From assembly GCF_032062105.1 (NCBI RefSeq), contig NW_026930709.1, forward strand, positions 248,001 to 312,000: 64,000 bases of DNA, read 5' to 3'. The notes under the pieces were generated by a model. The model did not search any database. It was given only the letters and a program-made list of their open reading frames with translations, and was not told the origin of the DNA. Made by a program: the position numbers and the translations under genes. Numbering within the stretch: the first letter of the stretch is position 1; every line of letters begins with the position of its first letter. Source of the stretch: Saccostrea cucullata. Taxonomy: Eukaryota. This document shows positions 5,801 to 64,000 of the stretch, in pieces.

Positions 5801-7590
5801 TACCTATTTTACGATCACTGTTAGCATTGTTTCGACGAATATGGTACATGTAAGCTAAAAAATGGAACTTCTATTGTCCATATTCGGATATGATAAAGAA
5901 ATGTTTGAAATGTTGAACCGCATGTACTGAATTTTGACAATGAGCCTCAGAACTATCATATTACTCATATAAAGTAATTACCATTTCTTTTCTCTCTTCT
6001 GTATACAGGATTTCTCTGCAAGAAGAACAATTCTGTTAAGGTAGGATTCTTCTCTGGTTTCTGACTAGATGAAACATTCAAAGTATATTTGCTTATATGT
6101 CTTATATATTTAGGTGCAAGGGATTTACAAGACCACATTTTTCTCTCCTCATTTGAATTGTACAACTTTAAATAGAAATGGTAAACTGCGCTTGAAAACT
6201 AGCAGGGACTATATTTTTGGCAGAATGGTGGCGTATGAAAATATCTTCTTTTCTGCCTCTCAAAATTATTACAGAACAATGAATTTAGTTATAATTTTTA
6301 TACAATCAAAGACTTCAAGAAATTTTCAAATGTAAGTTGAATCAATAATAAGGGACTAAACTTTCAAAATATATCAAATAAATATGATTTTTCAAACAAA
6401 CTAGAATTATGTTGGCTTTTAAACGCTTCCAATCAAAGTACAGATATGAACCATTAATCCATGAAAAGTATTTTTTCTCTCTTAGTAAACGGTCAAAACT
6501 TTGTTTTTGTATCATTTTGTATATTTAAAAGACTACTTTATTGTATGTGAAAATAAGAAAAAGTTAAATATAGGAAGCATCTGAAAGTAACTTATATATC
6601 CTTAAAAATTAAGAAAACAGAGAAAATTCGGATTAGCCAATATCCAGTTTAGTTAAATTATTTATGAAAATTTGGTAATATCATGCTACAGACCCGATAT
6701 AGTAATATCTTTTTATGCAAAAAGAACAATCTTTAAACTTTTGAAAGAGAAGTAGACATCATATGATTGGCAACAGTATTTTTTTTATTCTTAATGGCAA
6801 GGAAAAAGATAATGACCTTGACCTGACCTTGCCTCTTATATGAAACGGTCAAATTTATTTTCACTGATACTATGACTGACTAATATTGTCTTCTTGATTC
6901 TGTGAAAATTTCATTAACTTTTAAATACAAGAAAGATGAGAAGAATCCTACCTTAATCATTGACATTACTTCCTCGCAATCTTAGCAACAACCACACAGA
7001 AGTCTCAACAACACATAGTGTTTATTTCATTTTTTAATAGATAAATTAATGATAATATCATAATAATGGGGATCTTTGAAAATAATGCAAGCAAGCTGAA
7101 TGTTATAATAATGAAAAAGGGTTAAAACTACGAAATAGTGATAAATCTCAATACATATACCGGTATATGAACAAAGCAACAAACATCCTCAAGAATTCCA
7201 GAATACAAATGAACATTTACAAGTATCTCTGCCATCTTTTTCTTTCATTTGACAGTTTCTTGAATCCCCAAGAAGCGTAATACTTACGTTGATTTCAGAT
7301 GGTTTCTTCTGCCCATATAAGATATAGTTAGATTCAAATAAAGGCTTTTGTGCCAAATTTGCATGAGATTCATCAGAAATTTGCAGTCGTTGCAGTGTTT
7401 TTTCCAATTCATTTGTTTGAATAATCAAATAAGTTACAGCTACTGACAGGAAAACAACCGCAGCTCCAAGTACTTTGATGCATGTTGATAGGTATTTCTC
7501 ATGGCTGCAATTTGCACCGTGTTCAGATTTTTCCTGAATCGGCAGACACAAACACGTGCTTTCCGATTTCGGTAAACAATTGCACTCCAT
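2819..7590 (-). CDS. TNF-superfamily ligand TNF-A (type II membrane protein, ~328 aa, 8 coding exons)
   Basis: Exons (minus): 7288-7590, 5982-6015, 5326-5379, 4809-4844, 4587-4670, 4183-4357, 3233-3322, 2819-3029. All GT-AG, phases 0,1,1,1,1,2,2, 987 nt open. TM segment VLGAAVVFLSVAVTYLII, coiled stalk, furin-type REKR. THD motifs KKVVHLT, IKVRSPGIYLVYAQV, GMFKLECDD, SYFGVVQI. Confidence 0.9.
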
Positions 7591-40804: not shown

Positions 40805-43800
40805 CTACGAAAGAAAAACAACCCCAAAGAACGTCTTGTCTGGGCTAATTGTTACAGCCGTTTCTCTGGTAATCACTTTAATCTGAACTGTGTCCCCCTT
40901 CTTTAAATAATGCAAGCCCATCATATTGCACGTCTTCTCCTTTGCATTGAAGAAATCCGATATTTCATTTGGTTCATATTTGTCAATACTGTCGGCACAG
41001 TGAAAGATTCTTTTGTCCGAAACAAAAATTCCGAAGAATTCTCTAGGATCCTTTGTAAATTTCTCTATCTACCAAAAGAAACAAATTTTCTTTAAATCAA
41101 TTCAACTTAATGCATGGTATCGATGCAGAAAAACTAATATAAGCTTAATTTTTTCCAGTCATTTATTCTCTAAAAAGGATTATGAAAACAGTTGTCTTTC
41201 AATCGCATTTCACTTTCACAGAAAATTAAATTACACTGGTTTTCAATCTTCTTCTGTTGTATTAAAATTTGATTATCCTAATGACCATTCCTCAAAAGGC
41301 CCGATAGGAAAGAACATGAGAATACTTGCAAATTTTGTAGAATATATTTCAATAAGATAAATTCTTGGTTTGAAAATTAACAATCTGAATTTGCATAAAC
41401 ATTATTAATATTATAGTAATGTTTCAAGTGAAACAATACACATAAAAATTCATTTTAAAATATGCACACATATATATTTTGGAAAAAAACCCGTTTATAT
41501 AAAATAACTTTTAAAGATATATTTTCTTCATATATCCTTATACAAAATTAGGTTTCCATTCCACTTTTTAAAAATGGAGGTTATGCCATAATTTGGGTCT
41601 TTCAACAATCAGTTGAAATGTCTATGGGTACCCGTTATTAGTAGAATATTTTTGTATTCAAGCAAAATTTATCCAAAAACTTCATGAAAAAAAGTTCCTT
41701 GCTTTGGTCTTCAATTCAACATTTGAATATACCGATGACGTTTTATTAAGTGTCAATAATCATTTTCATTCTTACTTTGATTTGATACATGTCTTTGATT
41801 GATTGATTGATTGTATGTTGTTTAACGTCCTTTTGACATTTCTTAAAAGGAAGTAAAAGATACCACAGAGTTAGACATATATTTTTTTTATTTGAATATT
41901 TCACACAAAAAGACATTGATAGTAACCCAACAACAAAACTTTCAGATAAACACGATTAGTTCAACTTTTCTTTTGTCAGCTTGTCTTAATATTTATGTAA
42001 CAATATATGCCATTATCAACTAAGGTGGACTCTATGCCTTTCAGTTGATGTGTATACTCCTCGTACGAACGAACTCTAAAACGACGCAAGCTACTAAGCA
42101 TTGACAAATACGTTGACAAAACAAGGATCTCAACAGTCTCGTTTAAAGTCATCAGACTCATCAACATTATATGGTGGATACAATGCCCTTGTTAACAAAG
42201 GCAATCTATTATTAACGCGAATGTTGAATCATTTTTAAATAAAAAGTCGTTAGGCCATTGTTTTCGCACTGATTTACATTTGCCCTGGCCAGTCACGACA
42301 AGGAGCACCTGCCAGGACTGACCAATCGAGAGGAAATGCTTACTCCTCCATGGTACCTGACCCTATCCCTGATGGTTTAGAGGTCTTGGTTTGTTATGTT
42401 CCAAACTTGTATTGTTCCAATGAACTTTTGAGCTTAATTAATTACTATTCAATATCTACAAGTTTCATCAGTCTAGATTGTTTTAAATGAAAGCTGTCCA
42501 TTAAGATAAATACGTGGTATTTAATGCACCAGGTTTAAACTGATACTTTGTTGGAACAAACCTGTATTCTTTGTAGCTAATGGGCTTTTACGAAGAGCGC
42601 TGACTTTTACAGTTGACGGCATACTTTTACACTAGGAAAATGCACAGAAGCTCTTTTACGATATAACATTAGCTCAACATTCAAATAAACGAGAATAACG
42701 GATTATTTCAATGCAAATATAAGTTGTCCATGATTTAGCTCAACATTCAAATAAACGAGAATAACGGATTATTTCAATGCACATATAAGTTGTCCATGAA
42801 AAAAACGACAACCAACCTACCCTCAACTCACGGCCTTCACATGCAAGTGCCCCTAACACTCTATGATCATTAACAAGGTTTTCTTATGTGTTATCAATTC
42901 TGTACCTCCGTACATGATACAAGTTTAAATGTCCAAGTATGCCGTCAACTGTAGAAGTCATTGCTTCTCGTAAAAGTCCACTAATACTTAATATTAAATC
43001 ATATATATGGATAAAAATACATGGAGTTCAGAAGATATTTGACAACATTATAATTTAACGAACATACTGCCAGAATGGGTGGACTTTTTCAAACAACAGG
43101 GAATAGTTTAATTTCGCTTTAATAAGGTACCATACACATACCAATAGTTTAGTTTATGTTACAAAAAATAACTTTAATAAGATACCATACACAGTTACCT
43201 GAGCATATAAAAGATATAGTCCTGATTGTAGCACTTCAAATGATTCGTGTCTATCCGTATTAAGTCTCATTATGGTGTTTTGGTACTCATTTTTCATCCA
43301 GACAGCTTCTTGAAAATATGGAATAGCTTTGTATTTCTCTGTAAATGTGAAATTTAAGATAATGAATTTTATAAGAATCAACTTATTATATTGCAGTTTG
43401 TTCAAAAACTTTGATAATTATATTTTTTAATTTGATTCTTGTTCAAGAATTTCCATATATCAAAATAATGATCAAAGAAACTTACACAGAATGAATATTA
43501 ACCATGGTACAACTCTGAGATGAAATTGATATGTTTTCTTTTTTCCTAATGTTGATACTAGGGAATTATCTTAAAATACGTCAGATACAAACATAATTAT
43601 TGCGTATTTATTCATAAAGCGTGAAAAACCAGAAGTCTCTGTCGAGACTGAAGCTCTACTGGTTTGTACTTATAGCAAAGGAAGAGAAAAGTTCTTAAGA
43701 AGTTGGGAATTGAAACTTTACCACAGCAATAAAAAGAATAATGATCCTTGATTAAGTCTCTTTATGTTCTTAGTATAGTCTACTTGCATGCCACATTATA

Positions 43801-46800
43801 TTAAAATCAGATCAAAATTGTAGGAGGAGTAGCATTTTGAGATTTTTTAACAGAAATTTCTATTTTTAGTTACCATGGCAACACCGTTAATCGAAATCAA
43901 AAACCAATATACAGAATTACGTATCTTAGTGTAGTCTACTTGTGTGCCAAGTTATATTGAAATCAGACCAAAACTGTAGGAGGAGTAGCATTTTGAAAGA
44001 ATTTCACAGAAATTTCTATTTTTAGTAACAAGGCAACACCGTTCATCGAAATCAAAAACTGATAAACAGAATTATGTATCTTAGTGTAGTCTACTTGTAT
44101 GCTAAGTTATATTGAAATCAGACCAAAACTGTAGGAGAAGTAGCATTTTGAAAGAATTTCATAGAAATTTCTATTTTTAGTAACAACGGCAACACCGTTA
44201 ATCGAAATCAAAAACCGATAAACAGAATTATGTATCTTATTGTAGTCTACTTGTGTGCCAAGTTATATTGAAATCAGACCAAAACTGTAGGAGGAGTAGC
44301 ATTTTGAAAGAATTTCACAGAAATTTCTATTTTTAGCAACACGGCAACACCGTTCATCGAAATCAAAAATTGATATACAGAATTAAGTATCTTAATGTAG
44401 TCTACTTGTGTGCTAAGTTATATTAAAATCAGACCAAAAATGTAGAAGGAGTAGTATTTTGAAAGAATTTCACAGAAATTTCTATTTTTAGTAACCACGG
44501 CAACACCGTTCATCGAAATCAAAAACTGATACACAGAATTATGTATCTTAGTGTAGTCTACTTATGTGCCAAGTTATATTGAAATCAGACCAAAACTGTA
44601 GGAGAAGTAGCATTTTGAAAGAATTTCACAGAAATTTCTATTTTTAGTAACAACGGCAACACCGTTAATCAAAATCAAAAACCGATACACAGAATTATGT
44701 ATCTTAGTGTAGTTTACTTGTGTGCCAAATTATATTCAAATCAGACCAAAACTGTAGGAGGAGTAGCATTTTGAAAGATTGTTTACAGACAGACAGACAG
44801 ACGGACAGACAGATGGACGGACGACGGACGCATTACTATCGCATAAGCTCTTCTGGTCTCTGACCAGTAGAGCTAAAAAATTACCTCGACTCCAAAATGT
44901 TCTGTTTGAAGGGCAATAGAAGTCTTCTTTACTTAGTACACAATCTACAATGTTACAAATTGACAAAAAGGTAAATGTAGCTCTAAACATTGCTTAAAAT
45001 AGTAGAGGTAAGATCAAATAAAAAGTTAAGGAATGAAACTTTAACCTTGCGGAGGAAGAGATGATTTCCACTTTAGAAGTTTTTAATTTCAGATGCAAAC
45101 TACTTGACTGGATAATTATATAGAAACCACGGTGATTAATTGTAGTTGAATTATATCCACCTCTCGCGGTTTTGCTTCAGTCATCGTGCTTTTACATGGC
45201 AGACAATCTAAACCAATCTCCGTATGTGGCATACTTACCTTTTACATTCGGTGGACTGGTAATAAAATGGGCTGCTTGAAATTTTCCCTAAAAACAGAAA
45301 AATCGAAATTCTTATAAAATATTTCTTTTAGAACATGTTTTAGTGAACAGGGCCACATGATGAGACACCTATTAGTAACATTAGTAATACTGCTTCATAC
45401 AGGTTGGGAAAAAATCAAACAGACCTCCAAACCATCAGAGATAGGATTATGTTCCATAAACGTTTAGTACGAACACGGATATAGCGAATTCACCGATATA
45501 ACGAAGTTTTTCTGGGTCCCCGTCAAAATTCTTAACAAATCTTTTTAAAATTTTACGGTTATAACGAACTCTGATATAACGAATTTACGGATATAGCGAA
45601 CTGATTTTAGTCCCGTTGAGGTTAAATATAATGAATTCTACATCTTTTATAACGAACTTTCAAAGATTTCAAAATTTGAATAATGGAACTGACTTTATTT
45701 TCTCTCAGCATTTGTATATAAAATTCAATTCATAATAAAACCTTAGTTATCGAAGGTATGTTTTGTAATATTTGCTTCCCCAACATATTTGATAGTAACA
45801 CTTGAAGGAAAACATTCATATTGCGAATTCGCTATATATGGTTATACGAATTCGTTATACGGATATAACGAATTACGGATATAGCTAATTAAATTCACAG
45901 GTCCCCAGGACTTCGCTATAATCGTGTTTTACTGTATTATTTAGAAAGAATTTATAAGAAATAACTGCCATTTCATTCAAGCTTATAAAATTCAAACATG
46001 CATTTTTTTCTCTTAGTTTCTGCATTTACGTTATAGTCGCTTACTCAAATAAAATCTGTATATATATACTGAGTTTGTATACTAAAATTGAAATTAACTT
46101 ACAGGGGGGCCTTGTATGCCAGGAATTCCTGAAAAAGAGTGAAACGTGAACAACTGAAAATGTGAAAAATGTTTACTATAGCTAGACTGCAGTGATTTAT
46201 AGATAATTATGTTCTTTTGAGTTAAAGTACAAGTTAATCACTTGCGTTTAAAGTTTCCGAGTAAAAAATGTTCTAATGGGAGTTTAACAACAAATTTAAT
46301 TTTTAATTTTAAAAATAGAAATGCAGTTTACTTTTTTGTAATATTATAGAAAAACATGCTTATAACGAAGCGCCGGTAATGGGCGATTTTACTACGTCAT
46401 ACATGTATATGTAATTCGTTGTCATCATATTCTTTATATGTTTAAAACCCACGAAGAATGAAAATTTCTTCGCTATAAGCGTGAAACCATTATAATCGTG
46501 TTCCACTATAAGCGTGATTTAATATACTTTCAACTTGCCTTTTTCTCCTCGGGGACCCGGAGCCCCTGGTGGACATTTACATCTTCTGCGTTTTCTGATT
46601 TTGCTTCTTCTACGTTTGTTCTTTCGGTTTTTCTCTTTAAAAAAAAATACAGGAATCTTATTCGCATATTTTACTTTTATGACAAGAACAAGAGTATTTT
46701 AAGTTCCATAACTCTTCCATATCTCTTTCCAACACTACGCCTTTACATTTTCCCTGTCTCTTGTAAGTTTCTTAAAAATTCCAAAGCTTACAATAACTAA

Positions 46801-47416
46801 ACTTTATTCGTATTAAATTTTCTTTTTTGCTTATCGCTTTATACTTATAAAAAGTAAAATTCTACTTAGAAACTAAGTTGTCAACCCTGATACAAAACCT
46901 ACTAGGTTTGGGTGGTTTAGTTGAAGTGTCGACGCTCCGTTCGATTCTTTTCACTTCTTCTGATACACTAACAGTGTGCATCACGGATACAACTGATTCT
47001 ATGGAGTCCTAAAATTTAAAAAATTCTATAATTTTATTTTGACAAATTGACGTTATTGATCAAACATAGATCTAAATCTGAATTGAGAAATCATAAGAAT
47101 TTCCAAAATGCAACGTACAATGAATGTCAGAAACAGCTTAGTAAAATTCTAGAAAAGCAATTAAATTTGAAATATATTTTTAAATTAATTTATTCCAAGT
47201 AGATAACAACTTACTTACTTTTTCATTGTCTTTATATTCAGGAAATGACATGGATGCTACAATTTTGGAGAGTTCCCTTACTTCACTCTTCAACGCTGAC
47301 ATTTGGTAGGCAGACCAAATGCAGTAAAGAAATGCAGCAACAAGCAACACGTTCTTCGCAACGGAAGATGCAGATAAAGAAAAATTTATATCTACTTTCC
47401 TTTTCGGTTCAGACAT
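40805..47416 (-). CDS. Ectodysplasin-like TNF-superfamily ligand TNF-D with short collagen domain (~312 aa, 8 coding exons)
   Basis: Exons (minus): 47219-47416, 46903-47008, 46539-46634 (GC donor), 46103-46128, 45239-45287, 44885-44944, 43199-43338, 40805-41068. Phases 0,1,1,0,1,1,0; 939 nt. TM NVLLVAAFLYCIWSAY; KKNRKNKRRRSKIRKRRR-CKC-PP-GAPGPRGEKGIPGIQGPP. THD motifs QAAHF, FEVLQSGLYLLYAQI, FHCAD...KTCNMMGLHYLKKGD, TFFGVVFL. Confidence 0.88.
41560..42460 (+). mobile_element. Degraded Penelope-like reverse transcriptase remnant in the last TNF-D intron
   Basis: Frameshifted RT motifs (QQSVEMSMGT, resembling GIPMGT; FEYTDDVL, resembling YIDD) followed by the Penelope-type 3' block. A SINE-tail fragment (gatt)n sits at ~41795-41830. 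Confidence 0.7.
42574..42987. mobile_element. MITE-like inverted-repeat element with internal 66-bp tandem duplication
   Basis: Inverted arms cttttacgaagagcgctgacttttacagttgacggcatactt / aagtatgccgtcaactgtagaagtcattgcttctcgtaaaag. Direct duplication 42669-42733 / 42735-42799. Confidence 0.7.
43627..44880 (-). mobile_element. HINE/Helentron-type element carrying a 156-bp satellite array (~6.4 units, 43765-44777)
   Basis: Minus 5' TTTTTAGCTCTACTGG with subterminal inverted partner ccagtagagct, (GTCC/GTCT)n microsatellite, units spaced 155-156 bp, 3' hairpin agtctcgacagagact. A decayed relative lies at ~55977-56320 in a Kelch intron. Confidence 0.85.
45465..45934. mobile_element. Pogo/Tigger-like MITE
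   Basis: Inverted ends acacggatatagcgaa / ttcgctataatcgtgttttactg|ta with internal tataacgaa repeats. Related piece at ~46345-46520. Confidence 0.65.
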
Positions 47417-48074
47417 TTTAAAACTGCAACAGTATTAAAAATTTGCAGTAAAAAGGTAACATTTCCAGGGTTATTTGATTCTGAGAGTTATTCCTTTGCA
47501 CATGTTTCTGACTGCGACAACTTCTATTTTTCCCGGGAAGAAGTCTAAAAGCGTTACTTCCTGTGCCGTAACAAGAAAGTTCAACAACCCAATTCGTGGA
47601 ATTCTAGCAGGTGCCCCTGTTGAGCATAATGCATATATATTTTACGCTACATTATTTTGCATATTTAAATGGGACAGGTATATTGAGTTCGTGTCAATTC
47701 TTCTTAAATTTAATGACAATTAACTGAATGGCCTTCAGTGCAATTTATCTGTGGCCGTGATAATAATATTTACATGTTTGATAAAAGAACAGGGATTATA
47801 GGAGCATGTGTTCAGTTTATTTTTTACATATCTCTACTACGTAAATACCGTATGACACGTGATACAATAGTGCATTTCAAACGAATTTTTGAAATTTGTC
47901 TTTTTTTCCCTACTAGGATCAAAACGTGATTCTGATTTTTACGACTTGTAAAGAATGATTTTTAATTGATAATTTCCATTTACATATCCGTATATATACT
48001 AGTATTTGAAACTGGGGACAGGGAATTTTTCACAATGTAGAGAAGAGAGTTAAAAATTTAAATGTTTAGGCTTT

Positions 48075-48988: not shown

Positions 48989-51929
48989 TCACGTTTTGAG
49001 CAATATTGCCCCAAAGTTTGTATTTTCAGGCTTGAGTATGACTGCTGTATTTGCTGTAAGGAATCTGATGGAGAGCTGACTACCCTGTTGTAGAAAGAAA
49101 ACACCGGACACACTACAGGTTTTCCCTTTGGAGTACATAAAAGGATTAGAAGGATTTGATCTAACGTAGTCGAGGCTTTCCCGGCAGTCCAGCTTACGAT
49201 TGCTGTCAATGTAGATAGCTACGTCGTGTGATGATTTTGTGGCCTGGATCAAAACCTGGAGTATATTAATATACGACAAAAAAGTTTTATACTGTATCAA
49301 GTAAAGAATGAAGGTTTAAATTATGGATGATACAGTATCAGAACTATAGGATTAGAAGTTATGGAATGGAAAACAGATTGTAGGGGAAAGGTCAGAAAAT
49401 TTATGAAACACCTGCAAATACTTAACAAAATAACAGAAAAAGAAAGGAATCATCAGAAAATTGAACCTGAAAAGAAGTACATTAAAACAGTCAAACTACT
49501 ACTAGTTTGTGGACTGGAGTTTAGAAGGGCTAACCTTTATCTGTAGATATTGATAATGTAGTATGTACTGATATGATTCGTAATCCATATTCACTTTCTA
49601 TTTACTGATAAAGGTAAGTGTCAAAAGCATCAAGAGATAAAGATGGGCGTAGAAAACTATTTCAAGGCAATCCAGTAACACAGTGCCAATGATCTATTAT
49701 TTTAATTATCAACAATACCAAAAAAAAAAAATCTTATTTACAGTGTATGTTATTTGGCTTAGAAAATAAGTGGAATTGCAGAAGAAAATAAAGATATGCA
49801 ATGCATGGTTCGTTTTGCAAGACAATTGTTCATTGATAAGAATTAAATTAAAATAGAAAAACTCCCTTCTTATTACATGTTTTACAAGAAAATGATAAAT
49901 ATCTACCATTGTAACTGTTAATTAAATGAAAATATCCTGGTAACTTAAACACTGGGATATACAGACTTTCCAGCTGGTAAAGTGCTTTTAAAATCAACAT
50001 CAACAAAGAGAAAAAAAGTCATGGGAGCTGTCACAAATTATAACGATTGGAGGATACAGAAACTGGATGCACATTAATACAAGAAACATGTAAGCTTAGG
50101 TTGAATTACGTAAGTAAACTCCAAATGATTAGCAAAGGGATGAAAGAGAAACTGAAGTATAAATTAAAATGGAAAAGAATCTGAAAGTTTACATTGAAAT
50201 ATTAAACTTCTCCAAATTGGACTAAAAAAAATCTTGCATCTTGTGTCTACAGTGTAGAATACGAGATCGTTCAAAACAGCAAGTTTACAATGACATAAGA
50301 AGAAACTTGTAATCTACCAAAATGGTACCAGATAAACCGAAATCTTACATTGAGATACAAAAGATGAAGGCCAGATTTGGTCACTGTGAAGGAACTTGTG
50401 TCTGCTTGGCTTTGTGAAAGGGGTTCAACCTCCTCAATATGTTGTGACTTCATCCAAGATGAAGGTCTGAAAAATTTGACTCCGTGTAGAGGATCTACAA
50501 AGAGTTTGTGGATAGAGTATACTACAATATAGATTCTAGAATGTGGAAACAATTGGAGGCAAAGGAAATTATAATGTATTGCTACAGCAGAGACGTAATA
50601 AGCTTACCATTTATCATAAATGTTTGGTTTGCACAGAAAGTCCCCGACCAGACGTAGCAGCAGGAACCTGGAAAAAAAGAGCTTCCTATGATTAATACAT
50701 TAAAAAAATCAAAAAATAGGATGTAAATAACGGTATGGTTTATTAACTCTCGCTGCTCTTAAAGAAGTTATTTTGATAATTTAATTTGCTTTTGACTTGT
50801 TGTTACGTAATGTTTAATCTTCATTATGAGATGCTTTCATACTGAACCAACCTTTGCATTTTATTCCTTGTTTCTGATAAATGTCGTGATACTCGTGTGG
50901 CACATAATGAACTGCAGTTACTCCTGAATTGACCTAAGACAGAGACGAAACGAAAACATTAGTAATAAATTTTCATCATAATTTTGTTCGGATTGAATAT
51001 GATTATCAGTTCAAAATTATCAGAAGATGAGAACTTACATCACTGAGTAATTCCAGACCTGAAAGAATAAAAAAGAATTACAATTATGCGATATCATTTC
51101 GTTATTGAAAAAGCTCGTAAGTTGTTTTTTTAAATAAATACTTATTGAAAACCAACTTAATGCAAAATGGAAAAAATCGTACTTGGGCCTCCAGACAAAA
51201 ATCTTTTCATTCCTGTGTTTTCTGAAAAGCAAAAACAGACAAATTGCTCAACTCTTTGAAGTTTTTCTTGCTCAGTTACTTTTGTTGTAAATAATTACTT
51301 TCATTGTATTTCATATACTTATAATACTTGCATCTTTCTTATACCCATTTCAGTCGTGAAACTTTTTTAAAAAAGAAAATACTTGGAAGCCAATTCAATA
51401 TTTTAATTATTTACGTTCTCACGCAAACTATTTTATGCTATCCGACTAGAAGCGCAGTATATACTTAAGTCGTTATTGATAATTATATACTGAACTACTA
51501 CCTCTGGTCAGCATATTTGTTCTATAACTATCTCCAGCAACTTCGTCTTGCATTCTTTCAAGATCAATAACTGACTTTTGGTCTATACTCTACAACAGAA
51601 ATGTGTATTAAGAGACGGTGTGCTTTGATGCATATTACAAAAAAAGAAATTATTTGAAAAATTGTTTTTCAAAATATAGAACAGGAACAAACCGTGATAT
51701 TCCAGTTGAAAATTTTTGTTGAACTTAAGATTCTGCTCAGATTATTCACTTTTTCCACTACGTTTTGCACTTCGTTCATCATCTTTATATAAATGACAAG
51801 CAAACAACTGCAAACTCCAATGACCATCATAAAAAGTAATATAACAGCAATTTTAATTCCAGCTTTCTTTCGATACTTTTTAGACGTATATGCCATTTCA
51901 TTTAAGGAATAAACCTTGCAATTTGTCAT
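48989..51929 (-). CDS. TNF-superfamily ligand TNF-E (paralog of TNF-D without collagen, ~312 aa, 8 coding exons)
   Basis: Exons (minus): 51693-51929, 51502-51589, 51183-51221, 51039-51058, 50852-50933, 50608-50667, 50349-50494, 48989-49255. Phases 0,1,1,0,1,1,0; 939 nt. TM IAVILLFMMVIGVCSCLLVIYI. THD motifs TAVHY, FTVTKSGLHLLYLNV, LDCRE...KTCSVSGVFFLQQG, TNFGAILL. Confidence 0.87.
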
Positions 51930-56700: not shown

Positions 56701-59700
56701 TACCCATCAACTATAACTAAAGAAAACTGTGATCTGGACATGTGCATTTTGGCTTTTGGTGTCCAGCTCTTCTCTATCTGATCAAAGACATAGAAGTTAC
56801 TGGACACGCCTTCAGTGGTCACTGATCCTCGGTAGTTCAGCTTCCGAATCGATCCCCCCGCCAAGTAAATCTGGTTATCCCCAGTAATGGCGCACCCTGA
56901 AATGGAGTGAAGAAAAAATCAATTAACAAAGATACAGAATAAAAACAGGAAAAATCTAATCAATGAATTAGAATATATTATAATCACACAAGATCACAAA
57001 GATAAATGTGAATGAAAAATAAATGCAATTTCTTGATTTTTCATATAAACCTGCATAGGAAAGTGCAACTTAATGAATACGTTACAAACCTGGGGTATAT
57101 AAACTCTGTGGTAATTTACAAATGGTAATGACTTCTCCAGTTTTAGGTAAAAGCATCTCCATGCTGTTGAACTTCTTCATTTGTTCCTCTGTGTAGGGAT
57201 TGGCAATGATCATCACTCCCGTCTCGTACACCATTCCTCTCCGAGGCATGAGATTCAGGTCCATTTCGTGTTGTCTGTTGCGTAGCATGTGAAAATATCT
57301 CACAGTGTCCAGAATTTTTCTCAGAGATTCACAATCTTTCAGTGTTTTGCACCTGTCAATTCTATCACAAAAGTAATAAGAGCTAATGTTTGCAAATCTT
57401 ACACAATTCATTATTTCCATTAGATGTTCCATTCTGTTGTCTCTGTCCGTCAACAACCATTCCATGCAGGCTTCATAAACCGTCTCCTCATTGGTTACAT
57501 TAATGTCATCATCGCTTATAATCTCCACTAATTTGTCTGAGGGTAAGGACAGAAATTCCTGTTGTTTACACAGAACAGCAAATTGGTTGTTAACAATTTC
57601 TTTGGCTTTTGTGGCCAAGTCAGTGCATTCGTGAGCTTTTGCAAAGAAGTAAACACCAATACAGTTTGAAACAGTGATGTGATTCATCATAAACTCTGCA
57701 CAGCCACTTCTCAGTGAAAGTAACTGAAATCTGTTCGATGCTGACAGTAGATGTTGTACTGTTTCTTCTGAAAGCTTGACCTGGCCAGTGTATATATAGT
57801 CTAGGACTAAACCCATTGTCAATGGATCCAGCTCCTTCAATGTGATTTTGTTTTGCTGGCTTTCTGCCATATTTGTTGAAAACATGGCCATGAAGAAGGG
57901 ACTTGATATAGCAAGAACATTTTTATGACATGGGAATTCTGCTTCATCTACACAGAGTGTCACATCAACAAACTCTTTTTCTTGGTATAGTTTGGAAAAT
58001 CCCTGTAGAAGATTGACTGCCCTCTCTTTATCCACAAACTTGTCTTCAATGGGTGATTCATACTGAGTCGTAGAATCTAACAGGCTCTCCTGCTCCTGGG
58101 TACTTGAGGGATCATCTGGACTACTCATTTTCTCCTGAAATTAGATGGAATTTCCATGTATTAGAGGTATTAACTGATTTTAATTTTACATTTTTTCATC
58201 ATAATGCATTTTGCTGAGTATAGCATATTGCCTTCTAAATGTCACCAAAGACAGATCTATCTTTTAGTGAAATAATGTAATTCAAACTAAAACATTTTCA
58301 TTCAAAACGTTTAAAATCGGACTTTGGTGTGTCAAACCATCGGGGTATGGTGCACCCAAGACCATCGGTACTTTGGAGTCCCATCACACTTTGCAGATGT
58401 ATTAACTGATTTTAAGAAATGCATTTTGATAGCATATTGCCTTCTAAATGAACTTTTAGTGAAATAATATAATTCAAACTAAAACATCAAAATGCATGGA
58501 CAACATAAATAATTTTAGATCAGTAATATTCATGATATTGGTAATAGTGTGACAGGTGACCATTGCTTTATTCCTTATTAACATGTTTGTAAAAATATAT
58601 TAGGGGAAACACAATATCAGGGGACTCTTTGACCAAAATTGGGGACGTTTTGACCATTACTTCGGTTCCCATATGATTTTTTCCAAGAAAAAAAATGTAA
58701 TTAAGGGGGCGCTAAATTCGACCAAAATCAGGGGACGCTTTGACTAAAATTAGGGGACGCGTTTACCAATATTTGGGGGCGGTTTGGGGGGATGTTTTGT
58801 AACATCATTTTACTGTAAAATTCTATAAGGGGCGCTTTGACCAAAATCAGGGGGCATTTTGACCAAAATCAGGGGACGCTTTGACCGGGACGGTTTTATT
58901 AGGGGGCGCTTTGACTGGATTTCATTCATGATATTGGTAATAGTGTGACAGGTGGAGTAAGAAACACAATCAAGAGTTTAAACAAGAAACCAGTACAAGA
59001 ATGGGATGCAACAAGGAAACAATCATAAAAGAGAAAAGACAATCTGTGTTAGGACCAAACAGATCCAGAGCAATCTGTACATTAATTTGGCTTTGAATCA
59101 CCTATATGGCTTTATTTAGTTGTATTAATAAGTAATTCATTTTGTAACATTTACAATTTTCTGATTGTACCAGATATTGGAAAAGCTTTAATGAATACTG
59201 ATGCTTACAATACGAATAAGAAAACATCTTTACAGAGGTAAACAACTGAAAATCATAATGTGATTATCTAACAAAAAAAAAAAAAAAATCAGACGTATTA
59301 AATTTTTTCAAATGTAAGATATTAATGGCCACTTGCACAGGTCTCGGTTAAACCTGGGTCAGTGTAATCCAGGCTTAAGTTTAGCTCAAATTTGTTGATT
59401 CACTTGCACACCTGAAATACTCAGGTGAGATCAGCTCAGTATATTACCCTAGTTCTGAACCTGGCAGTAGGGAGGTTTAAACTAAGGTTTGGCATAGAAC
59501 ATGTAGAATGGATGAATATTTTGATAGAATTGATATGGTGACTATTATGTGGAAAAGCTCATAAGAAGAGAAAAATGTAATAAGAGATAGACAGAATCCA
59601 TTTTTATTTTATTCTGAAAAAAGAAATTGGTATGCACAGTAAATTATCTCCATTTTTCAGACACATTTAGAAAAAAAATATAAGATAATGTAATTCCACT

Positions 59701-61233: not shown

Positions 61234-64000
61234 ATGGCATTACCGTTTCTCCCGGGAAACTCTTTCAACAAAAGCGTAAGTAATATAAGATATATTTTTT
61301 ACTTAGTTTGTAATTCTAAATCTTAATAAACTTACGAGAAATGTGTTAGAGGAATAGAAATGGGATAAGTGTTTTCTGATTGCAGCATGTGTTGATAGCA
61401 GATGCATTTTTCAAATTAACAACATTGAAATAAATCTGTTGCATTTTATATCATCTTTTAAAAATATATACGTCTAATATCTTACATATGCATAAAAATC
61501 ATATTGTGTTCCATAAATTCCAGCTTGGTAAAACAAAATATCACAAATCTCACCATTTTGACTACAAAAATGAAGTTTCTATGCTGGTTGGAGAGGAGAA
61601 ACCTGGTATAGGTGGTGAGCTCCTTAGGGGTCAAAAAATAAAACCACAAAACACAGTCTTCCCAAAGGGAGAAGGAAGCAACTTGCCTGCATGGGTGGCC
61701 TTTGACAGACAGGTCCTGTGTTTTGATGCATATTTCCAAGAGGCTGTTTACGAGAAACGTGAAGAACAGTACAGAGTTCGTAACTGCAAGATCTATTTCT
61801 ACTTAGAAGATGATTCCATTCAAGTCATTGAACCAAGAGAAAAGAACAGTGGAGTACCACAAGGTAAAAAATAAGACACACTCAACTGTTTTGCAAATGA
61901 TTTTCTTACTTGAAATTAAAGTAGATCCTTGCTTTGTGTCATTATCATACATATCATCTCTTTTTCTCATAATCTTATTTTGCGACTGTTAAATCGACAT
62001 TAATGATCACAAATACCATATCAGAAGAGAGTTATTCCTTAAATCAGAATTTTTCAGTGTCATATATTTGTTAGTTGCACAGATCCCCAAAATTAAACCC
62101 AGGCTATGAAATTCATTTTCTTGATTTACAACAGGCACACTTATCCGAAGACACAGAATCCCCAAACCAGCTCCACATGATGATGAGTACTACACTGCCG
62201 AGGACTTTAACATTGGCTGTGAAATCAACCTTTACTCTAAAGTTTTCAAGATCACAAATGCAGATGATTTCACAAAGAACTTCCTCAGGAAAATGGGAGT
62301 CAGAGTCAATGAACCTGATAACAAACCAGAAAACCCATATACCAAATATAGGAAAGCTGTAAGTATTTCAAAGATGATTCAGCCCATTTAAAACCTAACC
62401 AAATGCTAACTGAAAACGATCTACGATTTGGTGTGTGTTTTTAAAAAAGTTATTGAAATATCCTTCTGAAAAATGACAATACCAATTAATCATCAAGATT
62501 TGTTTCAATAAACAATTCTAAAAAAAGATAATGCATATAAACTCACCTAGTATAATGTGTTTTCTCCCAGATGGATGAAAGCATGCAGCCACTCAGACCC
62601 TATGAGAAGCATGACACACTAAAACAATTCTTGGACCATGATCGTCACGTCTTACGCTTCTTCTGTTACTGGGATGACACGGACAGCATGTTTGGGGATC
62701 CGCGGGAACTGGTGCTCCATTACTTCTTGGCTGATGACACGATTGAAATCCGAGAAGTCATTCCTGCCAACTCTGGTAGAGATGCTGCCCCAATGTTCCT
62801 CAGGCGTGGAAAGCTTCCCAAGAACATTGAATCCCTCCGCCAGCCAGGAGAAATTACAGACAGGACTGTACTGAATGTATTTGGTCCAACTGGTCATGGA
62901 GGCAGATATATCTTAGATAGCTTAAAGGTACATAATTGAAGTTGTAAATATAAATAGATGTATGATATTTGCTCTTGTCAGATTGACAAAATTTTTTTTT
63001 AGTCAAATATGGGCTATGAGAAATAAAATTGAATGTATAAAACTTTTTAATATTAAATGTTACAGACAGGAGCAGTGAACACAGACTTCTACAGAGACAG
63101 TGATCTAACACTAGGATCTGTACTCAATGTCTGGGGAAGAAAAATCTTACTGTGTGATTGTGACGATTTCACAAAGGAGTACTATCGCACCAAGTATGGA
63201 ATTGGTAAGTGGAAACAATAGATCACATTTAAAAGCATGAAAATTCTGTTTTGTTTTAAGGAATTTCAGCAAATATCTTTCAGACTATGTCATTATCTAG
63301 AAATTAGAATCATACTTTTAATACCTTTTCAGAGGACTTCTCATCTGTCCAATACAAGAAGAACACCGGTGGAAATCCTCCACGTCAATTCCCTCCCTAC
63401 AATGGATGGGGAAGTGAGGAGGACTCCCTCTGCTCTTGTATGGGTCTCCTTCCCAAACCTCCCAAGAGGGACTTCATCAAGTTTATGGAGAAGGACAGAC
63501 GTGGACTTGACAGCAATGTCCTCCGTTTCCTGGCCCGTATGGACACATCCAAACCCATCGACCAGGAGCGACGCTTCATCATCTCCTACTATCTGTCTGA
63601 TGATACCATCTCAGTCTTTGAACCTCCTGTCAGAAATTCAGGTAATTTGTTATAAATAAACAGGGAACAGAAAGAGTTTCATTTTTTCTTTAGAAATTCA
63701 TGAAAAAGTGCCAGAAAATATCACTGCTAAAATATATTAACTAAATAATGAACAGATTGATTCAAAGACACTGAAATTTTACATTGAATTAACAAACCAT
63801 CGATCTATTTATTTGCACAAAGTTTTAAAAAAACATTTTAGAAAGAGAAATAAATTCAGTATTGATTAAACTCTGCTCTTGAATATTTTTGAAAATTCAC
63901 AAGTTACCTCCCTTTTGGCAGGAATCATTGGAGGTAAATTCTTGGAGAGGACCCGGATTAAGAAGCCTAACCAGCAGGCCTACAGTACAGAGATGTCCCA
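61234..64000 (+). CDS. EFHC2: EF-hand domain-containing family member C2 (DM10-domain ciliary microtubule inner protein), 3'-truncated by the window edge
   Basis: Exons 61234-61275, 61524-61863, 62135-62358, 62571-62927, 63066-63204, 63333-63641, 63922->64000, phase-consistent. N-terminus MALPFLPGNSFNKSLGKTKYHKS...EKPGIGGELLRGQKIKP...PAWVAFDRQVLCFDAYF matches the EFHC2 type; three DM10 domains are visible. Confidence 0.93.

Follow-up and report, generated by a model that had tools for sequence, protein, structure and literature searches.

Ectodysplasin (EDA) is a TNF-family ligand in which a furin site is followed by a positively charged, proteoglycan-binding stretch, a collagen region and then a TNF homology domain (THD) (PMC8606200; PMC9918506). 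A tandem splice donor in the mammalian gene produces two forms, EDA-A1 and EDA-A2, which differ by Val307-Glu308, two residues specific to EDA-A1 (PMC9918506). APRIL and BAFF belong to the same vertebrate EDA cluster and are thought to derive from one gene that existed before duplication (PMC7674686). A general likeness of invertebrate TNF-superfamily genes to EDA is already known (PMC7674686), and has long been known for Eiger, a type II TNF ligand from protostomes that has been described as resembling EDA most (PMC2772990). Reviews (Pantalacci 2008, as cited in PMC10029157) hold that the EDA pathway arose in jawless fishes. Here we describe a gene in a stretch of 64,000 nucleotides (nt) from the oyster Saccostrea cucullata (assembly GCF_032062105.1, contig NW_026930709.1, positions 248,001 to 312,000). 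This stretch, referred to below as the window, belongs to an assembly of 1.17 Gb and is AT-rich (GC content 0.32), and all positions are given in its own coordinates. Since both the layout of the encoded ligand and the splitting of its gene into exons match human EDA, the EDA-type design is probably older than the divergence of molluscs from vertebrates. The oyster ectodysplasin-type ligand most likely shares an ancestral gene with the EDA/APRIL/BAFF cluster of vertebrates and retains the ground plan of EDA.

The gene lies on the minus strand at 47416..40808, where eight exons encode a protein of 312 amino acids (aa). It agrees at every exon with the RefSeq protein XP_062567536.1, "ectodysplasin-A-like [Saccostrea cucullata]" (P0033, 312 aa). 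Exon boundaries were set by a script that compared neighbouring exon pairs with XP_062567536.1, and the searches reported below used single exons or database proteins. The features of the gene, in order of transcription, are as follows.

47219..47416, minus strand: exon 1, 198 nt, with the ATG at 47416 and 66 codons, ending in phase 0; it encodes a short cytoplasmic tail, a hydrophobic type II anchor and the start of the stalk (residues 1-66 of XP_062567536.1).
46903..47008, minus strand: exon 2, of 106 nt and phase 0 to 1, which encodes stalk; residues 21-24 of the exon form a furin-type site.
46937..46948, minus strand: the furin-type site itself, the assembly giving RIER and RNA contigs RIRR.
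46539..46634, minus strand: exon 3, 96 nt, phase 1 to 1, with the GC donor GCAAGT; in translation, a polybasic stretch (46634-46582), CKC (46581-46573), PP, the triplets GAP GPR GEK and the opening base of the following Gly codon.
46103..46128, minus strand: exon 4, 26 nt, phase 1 to 0; GIP GIQ GPP, the end of the collagen run.
45239..45287, minus strand: exon 5, 49 nt, phase 0 to 1; the start of the THD (A strand, AAHF), where the predicted model opens with a strand.
44885..44944, minus strand: exon 6, 60 nt, phase 1 to 1; a Cys loop (C-x9-C) inserted after the A strand.
43199..43338, minus strand: exon 7, 140 nt, phase 1 to 0; the THD as far as the C strand, ending ...LYLLYAQ, with the donor GTAACT.
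40808..41068, minus strand: exon 8, 261 nt, 87 codons starting in phase 0; the rest of the THD, with two EF-disulfide cysteines, followed by the stop codon TAG at 40807-40805.

To follow the splicing of these exons, RNA from four runs was aligned to 44950-47450, a region clear of a 156-bp satellite and covering the joints of exons 1 to 5. All four joints (47219 to 47008, 46903 to 46634, 46539 to 46128 and 46103 to 45287) were present in Logan RNA contigs from three studies (X1, X2 and X6), the second of them with four allele letters clipped at the end of exon 2. The two collagen joints, 46539 to 46128 and 46103 to 45287, were also found in two raw oligo-dT reads (X22). Intron 3 (donor 46533-46538) is of the GC-AG type, and its donor, GCAAGT, was used in all RNA records seen. 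A GT located five bases 3' of this donor was considered as an alternative; it would lead into another open frame with no Gly-X-Y repeat, and the RNA joints take the GC donor. None of the RNA records over 44950-47450 skipped exon 3 or exon 4. The joints of exons 5, 6, 7 and 8 are based on a loose end of an X2 contig, which at 45242 continues past exon 5 into sequence matching 44944 downward and hence into the 60-nt exon 6, together with database models (XP_062567536.1, the Saccostrea echinata orthologue P0001 and Crassostrea proteins). Crassostrea proteins derived from transcripts, which fall into one cluster of 140 members and another of 12, show the same CKC-collagen-THD order. We conclude that the oyster has a genuine TNF-family ligand gene and transcribes it.

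These data bear on an initial annotation of the locus, made from the letters of the sequence alone. It had read the small exons as giving a polybasic stretch, CKC, PP, six collagen triplets and then GKFQAAHF, and both the translation and the RNA joints bore this out, with exon 5 starting at 45287. Exons 1 to 5 are joined as it had proposed, and the two exons on which its reading turned, 46539-46634 and 46103-46128, are spliced in; the 60-nt Cys-loop exon at 44944-44885 had been overlooked.

From its N-terminus, the product runs through a type II anchor, a furin-type site, a polybasic stretch and CKC to six Gly-X-Y triplets and then a THD bearing EF-disulfide cysteines. The type II topology was read directly from exon 1, in which about 20 hydrophobic residues come after a short, charged N-terminus. 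At the furin-type site, two linked base changes (46941 and 46942) in the RNA contigs of three studies make the third codon AGA and the site RIRR, a canonical R-x-R-R, and orthologues have RLRR, RLKR or RVRR at this position. Assembly and RNA also disagree in the final four bases of exon 2 (Pro versus Thr). Exon 3 opens with 17 residues, 14 of which are Lys or Arg, and basic runs are kept across the mollusc family. This run had initially been labelled a polybasic/furin stretch. Its basic character holds, in correspondence with the proteoglycan-binding stretch of EDA, and it does contain RKRR, yet the conserved furin-type motif, R-x-[KR]-R, lies upstream in exon 2, and we rejected the polybasic run as the sole furin site. 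The collagen segment consists of six unbroken Gly-X-Y triplets across exons 3 and 4, which are joined in RNA; the Pfam Collagen profile scored 16.9 bits on residues 124-143 of XP_062567536.1, under its cut-off of 27.2. Pfam TNF (PF00229, cut-off 23) scored 24.5 bits on exon 8 alone and 31.9 bits on XP_062567536.1, and the two exon 8 cysteines were invariant in 13 mollusc sequences.

The exon maps of the oyster, Solemya, Gigantopelta and Patella genes were compared with that of human EDA, whose boundaries were obtained from splice-variant nomenclature: c.396+5, c.397-.._502+.., c.526+1, c.707-1 and c.793+1 (PMC7010634), c.742-2 (PMC10724520), and c.924+1 and c.925-3 (PMC10138843). The human series derived from these begins with an exon ending in phase 0, followed by exons of 106 nt (0 to 1), 24 nt (1 to 1), 180 nt (1 to 1), 35 nt (1 to 0), 52 nt (0 to 1) and 131 nt (1 to 0) and the last exon. 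The oyster series begins in the same way and continues with exons of 106 nt (0 to 1), 96 nt (1 to 1), 26 nt (1 to 0), 49 nt (0 to 1), 60 nt (1 to 1) and 140 nt (1 to 0) and the last exon. The oyster phases (0, 1, 1, 0, 1, 1 and 0, the sixth being that of the Cys-loop exon) thus match those of human EDA, save that there is one phase 1-1 collagen exon rather than two and that the phase 1-1 Cys-loop exon is extra. Exon 2 is 106 nt long in both genes and in both carries the furin site at exon residues 21-24, the human position being our own arithmetic from c.397 (residue 133) and Arg155/c.463 (PMC10138843). The boundary between oyster exons 7 and 8 directly follows the residue aligned to human Gln306, which is the position of the EDA-A2 donor, two codons before the A1 donor; at the latter boundary, c.924+1dupG results in p.V309fs (PMC10138843).

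The other molluscs compared share much of this scaffold. Solemya has the oyster phase series minus the Cys-loop exon, and its A-strand exon 5 is 52 nt long, as in human EDA. Gigantopelta has a 131-nt exon that ends after the C strand. The extra phase 1-1 exon is present in Saccostrea, Gigantopelta, Patella and Haliotis and is not found in Solemya.

The likeness to EDA extended to the THD itself. A profile built from 13 mollusc THDs was searched against all PDB chains, and the top match was EDA, at 63.8 bits (E 1.4e-16). The other solved THDs scored lower: APRIL 54.5, Eiger 50.1, BAFF 45 and TWEAK 31.7 bits, with TNF, RANKL and GITRL at about 26-31 bits (TNF about 30). In the HMMER alignments, both invariant mollusc cysteines aligned with the EF pair of EDA and APRIL. 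Single exons were less informative, as exon 7 alone had no match in the PDB and exon 8 alone gave weak matches to APRIL, BAFF and EDA. An AlphaFold model of the THD was a predicted jelly-roll (predicted local distance difference test, pLDDT, 84; predicted template modelling score, pTM, 0.81), and a Foldseek search with it returned EDA-A1/A2 at ranks 1-8 (E 2e-10 to 9e-10), then Eiger, TWEAK and APRIL. By profile and by predicted fold, therefore, the oyster THD is nearer to EDA than to the other TNF ligands among solved THDs. The initial annotation had named a THD far from the EDA/EF-disulfide clade as evidence against EDA orthology, and these results do not point that way.

Trimer modelling, which had been suggested as a check, gave a homotrimer with an interface score (ipSAE) of 0.90, compared with 0.00 for the best of three controls; at least 84% of contacts agreed between runs and partner pLDDT was at least 82. 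Among solved structures, 21 of 30 homomers and none of 23 single chains passed the ipSAE mark, and the result for the oyster THD may stem from the model having memorised solved THD trimers.

Relatives of the oyster gene were found in other bivalves and in gastropods. An exhaustive search with exon 8 identified 22 proteins at E <= 0.001, and those that could be traced or matched by sequence were all molluscan (three were unlabelled). Word-index protein searches with the mollusc alignment, the Gigantopelta THD and the S. echinata THD also returned molluscs only, a result that says nothing about other phyla because these searches required shared words of five residues. Collagen-bearing relatives in bivalves were identified in Saccostrea echinata, in Crassostrea virginica and further transcript-derived Crassostrea-like proteins (seven triplets), in Pinctada imbricata and in the protobranch Solemya velum. 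Among gastropods, Gigantopelta aegis has 11 triplets, with CKGC and a precomputed PF01391 match, and Patella vulgata has three triplets, with CKC. The EDA-like order of furin site, basic stretch, collagen and THD, which the initial annotation had read from this one gene, is thus not only transcribed in the oyster, it is conserved in molluscs. Both deep lineages of bivalves have collagen, as do two basal lineages of gastropods, which favours an ancestral collagen segment with later losses.

The window gene belongs to a cluster of TNF paralogues arranged in tandem. In a tree of molluscs only, with the Mizuhopecten row left out as too short, a split supported at 97/96 separated Solemya and the gastropods from the pteriomorph genes, and the collagen-less tandem paralogues grouped with the pteriomorph EDA-like genes. 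This grouping suggests that the tandem paralogues arose through local duplication and then lost their collagen.

The boundary after the C strand proved to be variable in gastropods. Isoforms of Patella vulgata differ by the presence of two residues (VS) exactly at this point, where the gene has the tandem donors GTAAGT GTAAGT (L008 4135-4165). In Haliotis asinina, some forms include VSAS at this boundary and others lack it (P0044/P0046), and models of Pomacea and Nucella have VR there. The gastropod alternative donor is located in the same intron as the human switch that yields EDA-A1 or EDA-A2 (Val307-Glu308). In mammals this switch toggles between EDA-A1 with EDAR and EDA-A2 with XEDAR. In the window, another GT lies six bases beyond the start of the exon 7 donor, GTAACT; the oyster models and transcripts showed the short form only, the aligned reads covering 44950-47450. 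The inserted residues could have arisen by convergence, since read-through of a phase-0 GT donor always gives Val. The Cys-loop exon is likewise subject to alternative use, being a cassette in Haliotis and Patella, in which the isoform pairs P0042/P0009 and P0032/P0031 differ by it.

Based on the analogy with EDA, APRIL, collectins and adiponectin, we propose that a proprotein convertase would cut the oyster protein at the exon 2 site (RIER/RIRR) and free the ectodomain. The polybasic stretch might then tether the ligand to proteoglycans of the heparan-sulphate type and limit its range. The CKC pair could form interchain disulfides, which would hold the six-triplet stalk in register or else link trimers into higher oligomers, and the trimeric, possibly multimerised, THD would cluster a receptor of the TNFR family.

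Several observations weigh against common descent with EDA, or against so EDA-like a mode of action. The cleavage, the binding to proteoglycans, the disulfide bonds and the triple helix are all inferred by analogy, and the assembly allele of the furin-type site carries Glu at P2. Identity to EDA was just 16-19% in structural alignments, and the lead of EDA over APRIL in the profile search was about 9 bits. The collagen of EDA has 19 triplets, as opposed to six in the oyster, and in models from Haliotis, Pomacea and Batillaria collagen is absent, the furin site and basic run being kept. In the exon comparison, the A-strand boundaries share their phase but sit about two to three codons off relative to the conserved His. 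Phase 1-1 is also common among collagen-like exons, and for that reason part of the phase match is expected by chance. The tree is one of molluscs only. Finally, none of the four TNFR loci examined in the oyster genome was EDAR-like, their likenesses being to p75NTR, DR6, OPG/HVEM and, weakly, BCMA.

Taking these points into account, we still regard descent from a gene ancestral to EDA, APRIL and BAFF as the probable origin of the oyster ligand. A more far-reaching version of this proposal is that the mollusc genes are true co-orthologues of the EDA/APRIL/BAFF cluster, that the complete ground plan, from convertase site through proteoglycan-binding stretch and collagen stalk to EF-disulfide THD, was present with its exon scaffold in the protostome-deuterostome ancestor and that the tandem-donor switch is ancient too. 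The antiquity of the switch would follow from the use of an alternative donor at the same intron in Patella and Haliotis. We put this version forward tentatively, judging it somewhat more likely to fail than to hold. If true, the EDA ligand module would have arisen in early bilaterians, before vertebrates or chordates.

The receptor complement is relevant to the function of the ligand. The oyster genome has 25 TNFR_c6 matches, among them a p75NTR-like exon with four cysteine-rich domains (CRDs) at G000:C22873:653494-654084 (L002; E 8e-22 to TNFRSF16) and a small, single-CRD membrane receptor at G000:C14567:307064-307567 (L004) with a weak BCMA-like match (E about 0.08). A functional alternative, which is compatible with common descent, is that the oyster protein is an Eiger-like cytokine of stress, immunity or apoptosis, acting through a small receptor of the Wengen/Grindelwald/BCMA type, with the collagen a mere stalk. 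The rank of the Eiger structures, next-best after EDA by fold, is consistent with such a role, as are the tandem cluster of TNF paralogues, the reported responses of oyster TNFs to biotic and abiotic stress (PMC4346834), and a receptor repertoire in which the single-CRD gene resembles BCMA and none of the four loci resembles EDAR. Against it, the module of furin site, basic stretch and collagen has been kept in more than one molluscan class; this conservation argues for the importance of a controlled range or of multimerisation, as in EDA (PMC8606200). We consider the cytokine role possible, though less likely than not. A role in shell or epithelial patterning, as first proposed for the locus, is speculation; the gene can be viewed as a candidate short-range epithelial signal amid TNF paralogues that lost collagen.

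The initial annotation had left the choice between ancient architecture and convergent capture of collagen. Under the latter, a mollusc-specific TNF member with an EF disulfide would have gained a short collagen-like exon and a basic linker independently of EDA, and the likeness to EDA would reflect convergence in layout together with membership of one broad subfamily. Such an origin would explain why the collagen is short, variable in length (3 to 11 triplets) and absent in several gastropods, and why the sequence likeness to EDA is weak, with APRIL and Eiger close behind. It would also fit the retrieval of no non-mollusc intermediates by our searches (the word-index search being blind to proteins that share no five-residue words), and the frequent phase 1-1 of collagen exons would have eased exon shuffling. 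However, capture of a collagen exon would not readily account for a match to human EDA that runs through the whole exon series, beyond the collagen exons, and that includes the 106-nt exon 2 with its furin site at the same residues, the split-Gly linker exon of phase 1 to 0, the A-strand exon of phase 0 to 1 (52 nt in Solemya as in human) and, following the C strand, a boundary in phase 0. Nor would it readily explain collagen in both deep bivalve lineages as well as in two basal gastropod lineages. As exon lengths and phases mirror human EDA, we favour the ancient architecture and regard independent capture as unlikely.

That the small exons are chance open frames, or the gene a pseudogene, could be imagined from the tiny exons 4 and 5 (26 and 49 nt), the GC donor of intron 3 and the low expression in the raw-read run, but is scarcely credible given the exon 1 to 5 joints in RNA contigs of three independent studies, the collagen joints in raw reads, the intact frame identical to XP_062567536.1 and the shared structure of orthologous Crassostrea transcripts.

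Other features of the window include two further TNF-family genes. Directly upstream of the ligand gene, at 48992-51929 on the minus strand, is a tandem TNF-ligand paralogue that lacks both collagen and a polybasic run. Its orthologue in S. echinata is LOC133202930 (P0013), with exon matches in the window at 51929-51693, 50930-50850, 50495-50346 and 49261-48992. A Pinctada model (P0004) fuses the same two neighbours, which shows the pair to be syntenic in pearl oysters. The third TNF-family gene (27217-28213, minus strand) has two THD exons that scored 26.3 and 17.5 bits with Pfam TNF; by eye, it has a break after a C strand ending ...LYLLYSQ and a cysteine pair of the EF type, and possible type II first exons are located at 33779-34126 and 7192-7590. 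Most other TNF genes of the oyster genome have the THD in a single open frame. The flanking genes are a BTB-BACK (kelch-like) open frame of 352 aa at 57085-58140 on the minus strand (Pfam BTB 95.8 and BACK 101.8 bits) and an EFHC-like gene at 61434-63656 on the plus strand, with three exons bearing DM10 domains (66-97 bits).

Repeats were observed in two introns of the ligand gene. Intron 6 contains the satellite, 6.5 copies of 156-bp units with a 91% match, at 43762-44778, which is followed by an (ACAG)n run at 44785-44829. Intron 4 contains an interspersed repeat at 45454-45957, over which RNA contig depth rose to between hundreds and tens of thousands, with many loose contig ends at 45460/45461 and 45936/45937; a related piece is apparently present at about 46380-46520. 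The depth over this repeat evidently represents transcripts of its other genomic copies.

RefSeq already names this gene and several of its mollusc relatives "ectodysplasin-A-like", and the novelty of the assignment is modest for that reason. Our literature search found no description of a collagen-bearing EDA-like ligand in molluscs, of its exon-by-exon correspondence with human EDA or of alternative donor use in gastropods. A mollusc gene with the domain order and exon scaffold of EDA is a concrete protostome counterpart to the vertebrate gene. It makes testable whether multimerisation through collagen and proteoglycan tethering were ancestral, how old an A1/A2-type switch is and what the original receptor was.

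Of the known systems, EDA is the closest to the oyster ligand. The two have in common a type II anchor, a furin site, a positively charged stretch, Gly-X-Y collagen and a THD in which the EF-disulfide cysteines align, and EDA is the best solved match by both profile and fold. They also share intron phases, a 106-nt exon 2 and a boundary after the C strand at the EDA-A2 donor. The oyster protein differs in its extra Cys-loop exon of 20 residues after the A strand and in its much shorter cytoplasmic tail (exon 1 has 66 codons, compared with 132 in EDA). In addition, its CKC pair directly adjoins the collagen; to our knowledge, human EDA has no such pair just before its collagen.

Eiger was next after EDA by fold and third by profile, at 50.1 versus 63.8 bits, and we know of no collagen repeat in it. 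APRIL and BAFF, the second and fourth best profile matches, resemble the oyster THD in having the EF disulfide. Both are released by furin, and APRIL has a basic, proteoglycan-binding stretch. Unlike the oyster protein, they are without a collagen domain, and if the oyster gene is co-orthologous to the whole EDA/APRIL/BAFF cluster, APRIL and BAFF would have lost it.

Outside the TNF family, a collagen stalk is combined with a trimeric head in C1q, adiponectin, the CTRP proteins and the collectins, in which N-terminal cysteines bridge chains or trimers, and these proteins serve as our working analogy for the CKC pair and mini-collagen of the oyster ligand. The heads themselves are of different kinds, a jelly-roll (gC1q) in C1q, adiponectin and CTRP, a C-type lectin domain in the collectins and a THD (Pfam TNF) in the oyster. 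Moreover, proteins of the C1q and collectin types are secreted by means of a signal peptide, whereas the oyster ligand is membrane-anchored and putatively released by a convertase.

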